Assembly: GCF_052425735.1 (NCBI RefSeq)
Contig: NC_135765.1
Span: 32,426,001-32,490,000, forward strand
Reading direction: 5' to 3'
DNA: 64,000 nt
Origin: Oculina patagonica
Taxonomy: Eukaryota
Position 1 is the stretch's first letter; each line of letters opens with the position of its first letter. The notes beneath the pieces were generated by a model that had not been told where the DNA came from, made no database searches, and worked only from the letters and a program-made list of their open reading frames with translations. A program made the position numbers and the translations under genes. Shown piece by piece: positions 10,690 through 61,975 of this stretch.

Positions 10690-13636
10690 ATGAGCCGTCA
10701 CACAGAATATGATGTTGCGGTCATTGGCGCAGGGATTTCTGGGATTGCAACAGCCAAGTGTCTTTTAGATGACAAGTTCAAGATCATTGTTTATGAGAAG
10801 ACTAACCACATTGGAGGATTGTGGCAGTTCACACAAGATGATTATGGAGTCATGAGCTTTACACACATGTATGTAGGAGCAGTATATCTCGTATTAATTA
10901 TTAGCTTGAAAAAATGTCATTGGTGGATCCATAACTACTCTAGGGGCAGGGTAGGGGGTATAAAGAAAGGTCCTTTCTCGATCTCAGAAAGGGGGTCCAG
11001 CATGAAGGAGAAGCCACGAGCCAAGCAGCCCACACTGCCGGAGCTTATTCCGGTTTCCGTAGCATTAAGCGGCTAGGAATATTTCTACTCCCCCCTGAAT
11101 GAGATGCTAGTCCATTGCAGGGTTCCCCCCCAGCATTATGTCGCCGGTACCCATTTATACACCTGGGTGGAGAGAGGCACTATGAGAGTAAAGTGTCTTG
11201 CCCAAGAACACAACACAAGTGACGCCGACCGGGGCTCGAACTCGGACCCCTCGATCCAGAGTCCGGCGCTCTAACCATTAGGCCACCGCGCCTCCCATGG
11301 AGGTGGACCCTTATTTGTTCAAATAAGGAGAGCATGGGCTGAAAAATTTCTGTCGCTGAATGCTGAGGTACACGTAGCAGTCACAGACCCAGACCTTCAG
11401 CTAAGTGGGGGGCCCGATCATCCAGCCCCTAGCATAAGGAGGGGACCGCTCTTAAAAATAATTTTTCTCGGCCACGTTGGGCCTCTATTTGGTCAAAAAA
11501 TAAGGTGGGGACCCGGGCCCCCTGGGCCCCTCCCCTAGATCCACCACTGTGTAAGCTGTAAAAGCTTTGCTTCTCTGCATGGTATTTTGTATGATGATGA
11601 TTATGCTCCTAAATGGAGAACTCTCATTTATAACAGTGACAATGGTGATTGTCTTGTTTTTCAGAGGTAAAGTTTTGTGGCTTAGTAGTGCTTAAATATG
11701 CATGTATGCTAGTTAAAATTAATATTAACAGAAAAATTAAAACAGAAACTACCTTGGTACCTCTTAGGGGTGAAACTGAACTCGAATCATGTTCAGATCT
11801 TGGTATCTTTTCTTAATCACACCTATCACCTCACCTCTCTGTAGGAGTACCTTCCCATTTCACAGTGTACCCTGACCTGGAAAGAATAGTGCTGAGCACA
11901 GATTTTCACATTCTCGTCCCCATAGCCCTTTCGTTTCTCTTAGCCGGCTTGGCACGAGAAAACGGAGGGCTCTGGGGACATAGGATTTTTGAATTAATTC
12001 GAATTTTTTTGATTGGCTGTTTGGAACAAAGAATTCCTAAACGGAAGTCAAAAACATAACGACTCTCTCATACATTCTTTTGAAATGTCATGACTGCATA
12101 CATGAAGACTGGAAGTCCTAGAATCTAGGACTGGAAATTCTCTGTCCCCAGAGCCCTTCGTTTTCTCGTGCCGAGGCTCAGCCGGCTAAGAGAAACGAAA
12201 GGGCTATGGGGATGAGAATGAGATTTTCATTAATCCTTTTTTATTCTTTCTTTTACAGCAATGTCTCCAAGCACAACTACTGCTTCTCAGACTTCCCATT
12301 CCCTGATGACGTTCCTGATTACCCGCACCACTCCCACATGGCAGAATATGTCAACAGATATGCCGAGCACTTTGGCATCAAGGAACACATCAGTTTCAGT
12401 ACTAAGGTGGAACGAATTGAAAAAGTCCCTGGGGGGTGGAAAATAACATCAATCAAAGCTAACGAAAAAGGGAAGGATCAACAAGGCCACCAGGAGATAT
12501 TTGTCAAGTTTGTTGCCATAGCAACAGGGCATCATGCCAAACCAAGAATGCCGTACTTTGATGGGCAGGAAACATTTCCTGGGAGAATTTTTCACAGTGT
12601 AGAATATAAAGATGCGATAACTAACGGTCTTGTAGGAAAGAAAGTAGTTGTAGTAGGTATTGGTAACAGTGCTGTTGATGTAGTGGTAAATGCCGTAGAA
12701 TCAAGCAGTAAAAAACCTGTTAGTATTTCTACGAGATCGGGTGCTTGGATTGTGCCAAATTACATCTTAGGTTTCCCCGCTGATCATTACGCTTGCCGCC
12801 TTTTCTTTTGGCTCCCTTGGAGCTTATCAAATTATGTCTTTGAATTGATGGTTCAAGGTGTGCTAGGGAGCCCATGGCAGTGGAATTTAAATCCCAAAAT
12901 GCGTGCTCGTCAAACCCAGCCAACGGTAAGCCCCACGTTAGTTCATCATATTCAGAGAAGAAATGTCACAGTTAAGCCTAACATTGTGACATTGAAGGGA
13001 AGTGAAGTGATTTTTACTGATGGTACTAAAACCACAGCAGATGCAATAGTGTGTTGTACTGGGTATCATATTGATTTACCATTTTTGGAAAGCAGTGTAA
13101 AAGATCTCGTTGTCAAAGAAAGTACTAACAAAATCAAGCTTTTCAAAAATGTTTTTGCTCCAGAAATCGGAGCTTCTTTGGCGTTTATTGGTTTTGCCCA
13201 GCCAGCGTCTGGTGGATTACTTTCAATTTCCGAAATCCAGGCAAGGTGGTTCTCTGAGCTGTGCAAAGGTGCAATCAAACTTCCTTCAGCGGAAAAAATG
13301 CACCAAGAAATTAAACAAGACCAGCAGAAAAATGAAAGCATTTATTTTGCGTCGGCTAGGCACACTATTCAACAAGACCCTATGACGTACAATGATGAAA
13401 TTGCATCATATTTTGGTGCAAAACCCCAACTGTGGAAACACCCTTCTTTGGCTTGGAATTTAATCGTTGGTTCATGCGGCGCAGCTCAGTGGAGGCTACA
13501 GGGTCCACACAAATGGGATAGGGCCAAAGATGTTGTGCGCGCTGTTCCAATCACACCACTGATGCATTATGGTACCTTGTTTGTGCTTCTTTTATTATTT
13601 TTTCTTATGCTTTTTGTTGTAGTTAAATGTTTTTAA
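10690..13636 (+). CDS. Flavin-containing monooxygenase (class B FMO), 2 coding exons 10690-10868 and 12259-13636, ~518 aa
   Basis: FAD GxGxxG (VIGAGISG), GGLW, spliced SFTHINVSK, FSDFPFP, FMO signature FPGRIFHSVEY, NADPH GIGNSA, CCTGY (F/ATGY-type), SEIQARW, C-terminal hydrophobic anchor. Confidence 0.95.
11008..11296 (-). mobile_element. tRNA-derived CORE-type SINE
   Basis: Minus-strand head GGGAGGCGCGGTGGCCTAATGG..GAGTTCGAGCCC (A and B boxes) and core TGTTCTTGGGCAAGACACTTTACTCTC; several more copies in the window. Confidence 0.85.
11909..12220. mobile_element. MITE with ~70-bp TIRs and 9-bp TSD (AcademH-type)
   Basis: AGATTTTCA|CATTCTCGTCCCCATAGCCC...GGGCTATGGGGATGAGAATG|AGATTTTCA. Confidence 0.85.
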
Positions 13637-59700: not shown

Positions 59701-61975
59701 CTTGCCAAGTTTCGCCTGATGTAGATGTCGTAGTCCTTGACAATCCGTGCTATAAGATCTGATGTGGAAATCCCCTCTGTTCTCTGGGTAGCTACAAACT
59801 TGCCCATAGCCTTAACTTCCTTGTATATATCTTCTGCACCTGCACTCTTGTACGGCAAATCATCGTGGGCAACAAAATCAATCTGAAAAACCCAACCAAA
59901 ACTGTTCACTAACTATCTTTATTTATCAATGCTGATTGTTGTTAAGCAGACAGGTGAAAGAAAAAAAAAGTACTGGAAATCAAATCAAATTCAGTCGAAA
60001 CCTTACTGTTTGTGAAAAGAATAAATGAATAAATGCATAGACAATACTGTCTGCCATTTATTGTTTTGGTTGTAAATGGAGAAAGGGGGGGGTGGAAGGG
60101 TGAATAATTATTTTAAATGATGAAGTGACTGATGAAGTGGAAAAAAAGAACTACTCCAGGAACAGGGAAAGTGGAACATTTTTTCAAGTGGGGGGCCTGA
60201 TTAATGACTTGAAGTGGGGGGGGGGAATGGGGGGCTTACAAGACTCTTCTTTTAGTAAGTCTTTATTTTTTGGAAATATTGGGGGGGGGGTTAAGTAACC
60301 CCAGCCCCCCCCACCCCGGCTCTATGAGGTAACATGTTTTACACAATCCCATTTACGCACCTTGTGAAGTTCAATGAAATCAGGAGTGATAGTCCAGGGT
60401 GCATCACGGACAACCTCGTCAACATAACGGCAGTGCCTGAGAGACTCGTACCGTTCATCCTCAGTCATAACAGTGAATCCTTTGTATTGATGCGTCAACT
60501 CGTCATTAGAAACTGTATTAAAAAAAAAAAAAAAAAAAAAAAATATGTTAACTCTGTTTTTAATACACCAATGTGGTAGATGAGAGGTGAAAATAATGAA
60601 ATTGATTATCTTATGAAAAATAGTGGATTAAAATAGAAATTCTCCCGTGCTTTATACAAAAAGTATGAAAAGTACCAAGGACTTTGATCAAGACCTAAGC
60701 TGGCTAAATGAATTTCAAAACTGCAGAATTAATCCAATCAACAAAATTTTACAGAATTTTAATTATTTGAACTTCAGACTTGCATGTCGGATTTTAAAAT
60801 CAGGCCATAGGATTTTGAACCAATCAGCTCATTGTTTGGGGTATAGCGTTACATTTCAAAGGTCAAAATTTCATTACTGTGAAAGGTTTTCAGATTTTAT
60901 TGTTTTTACCGAGGCAAGTAAAAATAGACTATAAGAAATCGGCGCTTCAGTTCTGATAAAATTGTAAGCATCGCCATTAATAATCAATTGAAGTTTATAA
61001 TTCATACCTCCTACCATCAAATACACTTCTGTGGGGAAAGCGCATTTCGCTTGCATCAAGGATTTCGCATGACCAAAATGGTATACATCATATACTCCGT
61101 CTGCGTACACTCGTATAGGTCTTGTTGCTACAAGAAAAGTTGATAAGTGTTATAAAATAAAGTGGTCTTAAAAGCGTTCCAAAAATAGTAGTCCGCTTTA
61201 ACAAATCGTGAAATGCTTATTAAGCGCGCGCAGAACAGCTGGCGAAAGATTTGTTTAACTTAAAATTAATCGAAATACAAAAGTTAAAATAAATCCCAGC
61301 TTTTGACATATACCTTTCCCAGCTTTAGCGTCTTGTAAACTTATTGGTTCTAGATCTTCCACAACTTGTTCATCTGAGGGTGAAATAGTCAAATCTGGCT
61401 CGAAAAAGCCGGCAGGTTCACGCGGAGCCTATAAAACCAAGCGAAAAACAAAGCATAAATATTAAAATTAAAAGAAATCCACTGGGCCGCAATTTATATC
61501 ATCTTAGCTGTAGATTCTACGGATAATTGCCCGGAAATTACAATAGAAGACAGGTGAATGAGTTATTCAGTAAACAGCAAAGTATCAAAATGCAAGTACA
61601 CAAATAACAAAAGGACAACGAGGGATTTTCGTCCTATTGTTTTCAGCTTCGAGTTGTACATTTCAACAGCCGTAAAAACAGAGAACTAAACAGCTTGCGT
61701 TGCTTGAATTAGCCATCAAGAAAAATGCAAGAAAATATGAAATATCTTTCAATACTCTTGCTACGAAAAGCTTGTCTAAGCTAATTTTGTTTTTCCTCTC
61801 CAAGTGGGAGCTATTTAATAGCTGCGAGCAAATTTGTTCAAATTCTTACCACCACGCGCATGCTTTTGTTCTTGGCTGCCCCATTCGCATCCGCATCCAG
61901 GGAGCTGGGGCGTTTTCTTTTCCGTGAACCATTCTGTTTTCTAGCTTCTCCTGAAGAGCTCTTCGGAGAAGACAT
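56736..61975 (-). CDS. PCYT1: Choline-phosphate cytidylyltransferase (CCT), 7 exons, ~381 aa
   Basis: Exons 61850-61975, 61314-61428, 61008-61127, 60361-60512, 59661-59882, 58655-58801, 56736-56999; [24 protein letters not shown] (HxGH), [22 protein letters not shown], amphipathic M helix, SP-rich tail. Confidence 0.96.
59307..59563 (-). mobile_element. Diverged CORE-type SINE in a PCYT1 intron
   Basis: GAGAGTAAAGTGTCTTGCCCAAGAAC core and decayed tRNA head. Confidence 0.75.

Follow-up and report, generated by a model that had tools for sequence, protein, structure and literature searches.

The 64,000-nucleotide stretch of the genome of the scleractinian coral Oculina patagonica analysed here (the window; contig NC_135765.1, positions 32,426,001 to 32,490,000) carries a gene for a flavin-containing monooxygenase (FMO) of the FMO5-like type, a choline-phosphate cytidylyltransferase gene (PCYT1) and, between them, an array of genes related to histamine N-methyltransferase (HNMT). 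The locus is an ordinary, well-resolved birth-and-death array inserted between conserved neighbours. We consider it likely that this HNMT-family array is lineage-specific, that it grew between ancestrally adjacent FMO5-like and PCYT1 genes, and that its adjacency to FMO is incidental. The original prediction had read the same genes as a candidate pathway cluster. Every element it named (an intact FMO, a partial second FMO, a TRIM-NHL gene, HNMT-like genes and a PCYT1 boundary) was recovered with Pfam, tblastn and tblastx searches.

Synteny of the FMO–PCYT1 interval

The distance from FMO to PCYT1 is 43.1 kb in O. patagonica. In Orbicella faveolata and Pocillopora meandrina the annotated order is POLA1(-)/FMO(+)/PCYT1(-)/LRR(+), where POLA1 encodes the DNA polymerase alpha catalytic subunit and LRR is a leucine-rich repeat gene; the FMO–PCYT1 gaps are 1.8 kb and 3.4 kb respectively, with no methyltransferase between the two genes. 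Comparison of the window by tblastx with the coral assemblies ERZ25071802 and ERZ25071792 revealed the same POLA1-FMO-PCYT1-LRR order, with gaps of 4.2 and 2.2 kb and no methyltransferase beside FMO. Nematostella retains POLA1(-) and FMO(+) head-to-head, and no methyltransferase was found within 10 kb of its FMO. No relics of an array were seen at the FMO–PCYT1 loci of the four array-free corals, and the absence of the array from them is therefore read as primary.

Only one other genome, that of the close relative ERZ25067872, resembles Oculina. Its FMO, which is 89% identical to that of Oculina (dS 0.43), is separated from PCYT1 by 41.3 kb containing the HNMT-like genes a1(+), a2(+), a3(-), a4(+), b1(+) and a5(-) and a seven-transmembrane (7TM) G-protein-coupled receptor (GPCR) gene; neither a TRIM-NHL gene nor an FMO fragment was found in this gap. 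The receptor gene is intronless (L008:10758-11513), lies between the methyltransferase array and PCYT1, and has no counterpart in the Oculina window. FMO and methyltransferases are thus linked in two genomes (Oculina and ERZ25067872) and unlinked in the other five of the seven compared (Orbicella, Pocillopora, ERZ25071802, ERZ25071792 and Nematostella). Linkage of enzyme classes conserved across related genomes, which marks a gene cluster, was not found, and on this point the proposed FMO and methyltransferase pathway cluster fails; in most related genomes the two are unlinked, which the original prediction had itself named as speaking against it.

The FMO gene occupies the plus strand in two exons with GT/AG borders (exon 1, 10690-10868; exon 2, 12259-13636) and encodes 518 amino acids; the NCBI model, XP_078381654.1, is named flavin-containing monooxygenase 5-like from Oculina patagonica. 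It has the features of a class B FMO: the FMO-like domain is full-length (Pfam, E 1e-88), with exon 1 matching PF00743 profile positions 4-45 and exon 2 matching positions 54-486, and the N-terminal FAD motif GxGxxG is present as GAGISG. Identity is 55–60% to FMO5-like proteins of amphioxus, hemichordates, echinoderms and molluscs and 73–91% to those of other corals, while the next FMO in the Oculina genome is only 37% identical. The gene is a conserved metazoan FMO5-like orthologue that is ancestral at the locus, the methyltransferases having come later, and the adjacency therefore looks accidental. Its dN/dS ratio is 0.12 in comparison with the array-carrying relative and 0.13 in comparison with an array-free coral; as the two values are alike, there is no sign of a changed role. 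That role is most likely housekeeping or xenobiotic. Horizontal transfer was considered as an origin for the FMO and rejected, since orthologues occur across Metazoa.

The partial second FMO is a pseudogene piece on the plus strand at 14585-14992. It comprises a 3′ fragment, residues 367-514 only, and is 84% identical to the intact gene at the amino acid level and 93% at the nucleotide level (nucleotide match to 13154-13554).

POLA1 and the FMO5-like gene lie head-to-head less than 1–2 kb apart in Oculina (9869-10690), Orbicella, ERZ25071802 and ERZ25071792. They are also head-to-head in Nematostella, at about 2.5 kb; in the Pocillopora annotation POLA1 lies upstream at about 9.9 kb. The two form an ancient, divergently arranged gene pair and may share a promoter.

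Composition and growth of the array

Nine gene-length, intronless HNMT-like copies were counted between FMO and PCYT1, seven belonging to clade A and two to clade B; five have intact full-length frames and four are broken. Ten copies had been claimed, and the tenth may correspond to a clade A 5′ relic of 20 codons (28835-28894, plus strand). The division into two clades is borne out by the sequences, which are about 30% identical between clades and are divided by the deepest split in the family tree. Matching proteins carry the NCBI name histamine N-methyltransferase-like, again from Oculina patagonica.

The first genes of the array lie on the minus strand. A1 (24269-25192) is intact and encodes 307 amino acids; B1 (27263-28172) has a frameshift near 27345, close to its 3′ end, that leaves a frame of 278 amino acids, and stands head-to-head with the relic; A2 (29899-30817) is a pseudogene with a frameshift near 30431-30444; and A3 (33727-34650) is intact, with 307 amino acids. 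A3 is head-to-head with B2 (35266-36177, plus strand), which is intact and encodes 303 amino acids. Further along the plus strand, A4 (38216-39133) is a pseudogene with an in-frame TAA at codon 54, position 38375. A5 (43201-44121) and A6 (47883-48803) are intact, and A7 (52559-53484) is broken by a frameshift near 53053. These last three genes, also on the plus strand, are contained one each in three tandem units of about 4.68 kb (40958-54762, plus strand), which are 94% identical over 9.2 kb. A second, inverted duplication pairs 24.2-28.35 kb with 39.15-35.08 kb.

Each 4.68-kb unit also contains a 153-bp minisatellite (44671-45564, 49341-50238 and 54025-54759) of about 5–6 copies with an 83–88% match, which explains several long spurious open reading frames (ORFs), for example 44821-45687.

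In the family tree the A copies of Oculina and those of the relative fall within one clade (94/100), in separate subclades that are each confined to one species. B1 and B2 form a clade with b1 of the relative (99/98), distinct from their nearest dispersed paralogue (on contig C13, 75% identical). Values of dS among the Oculina A copies range from 0.029 (A5/A6) to 0.30, and those between Oculina and ERZ25067872 are 0.32–0.38 for A, 0.59 for B and 0.43 for FMO. The tree and the dS values together indicate that at least one A gene and at least one B gene were in the spacer before the species split, and that the copies were amplified separately afterwards. The array thus shows the marks of birth-and-death evolution, with tandem paralogues of mixed age, pseudogenes (four of the nine copies being broken) and species-specific subclades. 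Clade A has dN/dS ratios of 0.33–0.5 and clade B of 0.15–0.29.

An unplaced 7.4-kb contig, C44, carries at 4042-4956 an intact A1-like gene with 90% amino acid identity and a dS of 0.14; it represents either an additional member of the array or a divergent haplotype.

The following course of events would account for the locus. The founding unit was probably one clade A and one clade B gene arranged head-to-head, and would already have been present in the FMO–PCYT1 spacer, which is normally 2–4 kb long, in the common ancestor of Oculina and ERZ25067872. Each lineage would then have enlarged it independently by unequal crossing-over and inverted duplication, a process that would have left pseudogenes and taken in unrelated intronless genes, TRIM-NHL in Oculina and the GPCR in the relative. 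The three 4.68-kb units, with a dS of 0.03 between A5 and A6, would be part of the recent growth in Oculina. The resident FMO would predate all of this, and its position next to the methyltransferases is most likely incidental.

Some considerations weigh against this account. FMO, A and B have stayed linked in two species from the time they diverged (dS about 0.4), although a secondary functional link is unlikely. The array could in principle be missing from the four other corals through loss rather than primary absence, and its phylogenetic depth is only roughly bounded.

The methyltransferases and the head-to-head pair

Human HNMT is the sole match of both clades in the Protein Data Bank (PDB). 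Single sequences searched with phmmer matched it with E values of 2e-16 (clade A) and 8e-20 (clade B), and profiles with 1.3e-18 and 3.4e-33 respectively, the clade B profile covering HNMT residues 5-282 of 292. A confident structural model of clade B (pLDDT 88.7) superimposed in Foldseek on HNMT 1jqd with TM scores of 0.82/0.86, the next-best methyltransferase fold scoring about 0.5; the clade A model came from a shallow alignment, reached a pLDDT of 40 and was discarded. Motif I for binding S-adenosylmethionine (SAM) reads GSGDGE in clade A and GSGS(S/G)E in clade B, and is accompanied by a conserved E-P after strand 2. The motif I and E-P columns are invariant in the clade alignments, and the SAM motifs are kept across two to three species. 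With the core motifs of a Rossmann-type SAM enzyme and full-length similarity to HNMT that includes the substrate-binding domain, the sequences place A and B among the HNMT-family SAM-dependent small-molecule methyltransferases.

The polar pocket of HNMT itself is formed by Glu28, Gln143 and Asn283 (PMC9867436). When the pocket was aligned with HMMER, Gln143 was found to be replaced by His in both clades, and Glu28 by Ile/Val in B and by a non-acidic residue in A. Asn283 falls outside the aligned region, and clade B has an Asn within one position. Judged by Glu28 and Gln143, the polar pocket of HNMT proper is therefore not found in these proteins. Because these two residues are changed, histamine is unlikely as a substrate, and A and B are probably not histamine methyltransferases. 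The fold and SAM motifs are kept and the polar pocket residues altered, from which we infer that A and B probably act as N-methyltransferases on small heteroaromatic or amine compounds different from histamine. The sequence assigns no particular substrate, as had been said at the outset.

Origins of the methyltransferases other than local duplication were also considered. A retrogene argument was rejected, since all 20 family members fetched from the genome for comparison are single ORFs of about 300 amino acids. Horizontal transfer was rejected as well, HNMT-family members having been reported in Anthozoa and deuterostomes (PMC10244343).

A3 and B2 share a spacer of 615 bp (34651-35265), and B1 on the minus strand faces the clade A relic across 663 bp. 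On a 5-kb scaffold from a Tara metagenome (L032, ERZ28654993), derived from a third coral, a B-type gene with 79% identity to B2 stands head-to-head with an A-type gene (about 71% identity) at a distance of 378 bp, and about 290 nt of this A/B spacer aligns to the Oculina spacer. Within the spacer, about 275 nt beside A are conserved upstream of all A copies of the relative and on the Tara scaffold, and about 70 nt beside B are conserved upstream of the relative's b1. From these alignments the ancestral unit looks like a divergent A/B pair. A metagenome scan for array-type loci returned short contigs only, carrying a sister A-like group at 53–60% identity; no B or FMO neighbours were seen on those short contigs.

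The pair bears on a second explanation of the locus, according to which the functional unit is A and B alone: the two enzymes, only 30% identical and driven from a shared spacer, would carry out two different methylations, either of a single scaffold or of related substrates, with the extra A copies serving as dosage or diversifying duplicates. This explanation accommodates the head-to-head arrangement of A(-) and B(+) at 33727-36177, the relic pair at 27263-28894, and the conservation of both the pair and some 290 nt of its spacer on the Tara scaffold. It is also consistent with the occurrence of A and B together in the relative's array, with the fact that no other Oculina array mixes clades, and with the clear purifying selection on B (dN/dS 0.15–0.29). 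However, b1 of the relative has lost its head-to-head arrangement with an A copy, each gene has its own proximal promoter block, so that co-regulation is not required, and adjacency that stems from one founding event reflects history rather than function. We therefore regard a functional A/B unit as possible, though doubtful as an explanation of the whole locus. The evidence modestly favours the A/B pair over FMO plus methyltransferase as the better candidate functional unit. There is a slim chance that the pair forms a two-enzyme methylation module in a coral lineage, which might for example add methyl groups to the two ring nitrogens of an imidazole acid and so yield a 1,3-dimethylimidazolium betaine of the norzooanemonin/zooanemonin type, with the resident FMO perhaps recruited later; a literature search found no host enzymes for betaines of this type.

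That A and/or B and then FMO act in sequence on one substrate, with their linkage under selection, appears improbable. FMO, A and B lie side by side in two species, and methylation followed by oxygenation is plausible chemistry, given what is generally known of class B FMOs and HNMT-family enzymes. Yet the FMO is ancestral and slowly evolving, is flanked by POLA1 and PCYT1 in array-free corals as well, and is under equal constraint whether compared with the array-carrying relative or with an array-free species. Other HNMT-like arrays are nowhere near an FMO. Moreover, unrelated genes interrupt the supposed cluster: TRIM-NHL separates FMO from the methyltransferases in Oculina, and in the relative the GPCR gene separates the methyltransferases from PCYT1.

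It is similarly improbable that most of the array is duplicated DNA without function and in decay: four copies out of nine are broken, dN/dS in clade A is fairly high (0.33–0.5) and no transcript-like Logan contigs were seen for the exact array proteins, but five intact frames of 303–307 amino acids have survived to dS values of up to 0.3, no dN/dS ratio reaches 1 and conservation of the SAM motifs extends over two to three species.

Genomic context and known systems

At least 40 other HNMT-like matches occur in the Oculina genome, in arrays and as singletons on contigs C7, C8, C4, C13, C2, C6 and C44. None of these matches adjoins an FMO, the nearest case being 683 kb apart on C7. The TRIM-NHL gene that accompanies the array in the window (18080-20317, minus strand) is an intact, intronless ORF of 745 amino acids with RING, B-box, filamin and NHL domains (Pfam). 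It is an unrelated, dispersed copy from a very large family of intronless genes; the most similar members, at 76–78% identity, lie in an array on C12. As both HNMT-like arrays and TRIM-NHL genes are dispersed elsewhere in the genome, the FMO–PCYT1 spacer acts like a site at which scattered intronless genes can readily settle.

Intronless TRIM-NHL genes form large tandem arrays at C12 9.33-9.54 Mb, C5 26.36-26.39 Mb and C11 16.47-16.53 Mb, and a first look at the genome gave 431 candidates. Upstream of the TRIM-NHL gene in the window there is an inverted repeat of 80 nt (20638-20804), perfectly matched and with 7 nt between its arms, in which no hammerhead or other Rfam family was detected at the gathering threshold.

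The flanking genes were assigned by tblastx. On the minus strand, 5′ exons of POLA1 (about 880-9869) match the annotated POLA1 genes of Orbicella and Pocillopora, which carry the Pfam domains DNA_pol_alpha_N and DNA_pol_B. The PCYT1 exons (about 56786-61988, minus strand) match annotated CTP_transf_like genes, and the exon at 59637-59909 matches rat/human CCT-alpha (4mvc; E 1e-33). The earlier caution that a link to choline metabolism through PCYT1 may be coincidental still holds. Beyond PCYT1 lies the first exon of its conserved neighbour, the LRR gene (62196-62755, plus strand). A Pfam scan of nine ORFs between the genes of the locus found no domains, and neither a transposase nor a reverse transcriptase. 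Three tRNA-like sequences were also seen: 1648-1721 (plus strand) in a POLA1 intron, 15206-15277 (minus strand) directly past the FMO fragment, and 63812-63884 (minus strand) in the region of the LRR gene. They comprise a Thr-GGT, an Arg-CCG and a third whose anticodon loop is unusual, and may be tRNA-derived short interspersed elements.

Physical clustering in animal genomes is increasingly taken as a sign of a biosynthetic pathway, and the FMO–PCYT1 locus illustrates how such a signal can originate by accident. Here a permissive spacer between conserved genes gathered an expanding intronless family, leaving a methyltransferase array beside an old monooxygenase. Comparative synteny is a cheap way to decide between cluster and accident. 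What remains of lasting interest is a coral HNMT-like family with fast turnover and one conserved pairing of two deep clades.

Among known systems, human HNMT (PDB 1JQD, 1JQE, 2AOT) shares with the coral proteins near full-length similarity, a two-domain fold, the motif I loop and the Glu-Pro of strand 2. It differs in that identity is only about 24% and Gln143 and Glu28 are replaced, and in that the coral genes are intronless and multi-copy. A chicken HNMT-like protein is a carnosine N-methyltransferase (PMC3660329), and so offers a parallel in which HNMT-family paralogues have moved to other imidazole substrates, with no orthology to the coral genes implied. The other HNMT-like arrays of the Oculina genome (C7 6.12-6.17 Mb, C7 21.6-22.0 Mb, C8 24.90-24.96 Mb, and on C4, C13 and C2) resemble the present one in being local groups of intronless ORFs of about 300 amino acids that include pseudogenes. 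Each of them, however, consists of a single clade, whereas the FMO–PCYT1 array alone mixes two deep clades and adjoins an FMO.

Biosynthetic gene clusters do exist in animals, as exemplified by the terpene clusters of octocorals. The Oculina locus resembles these in the physical proximity of two enzyme classes. It differs from them in that its linkage is not conserved across the wider clade and its FMO is a pre-existing conserved orthologue.

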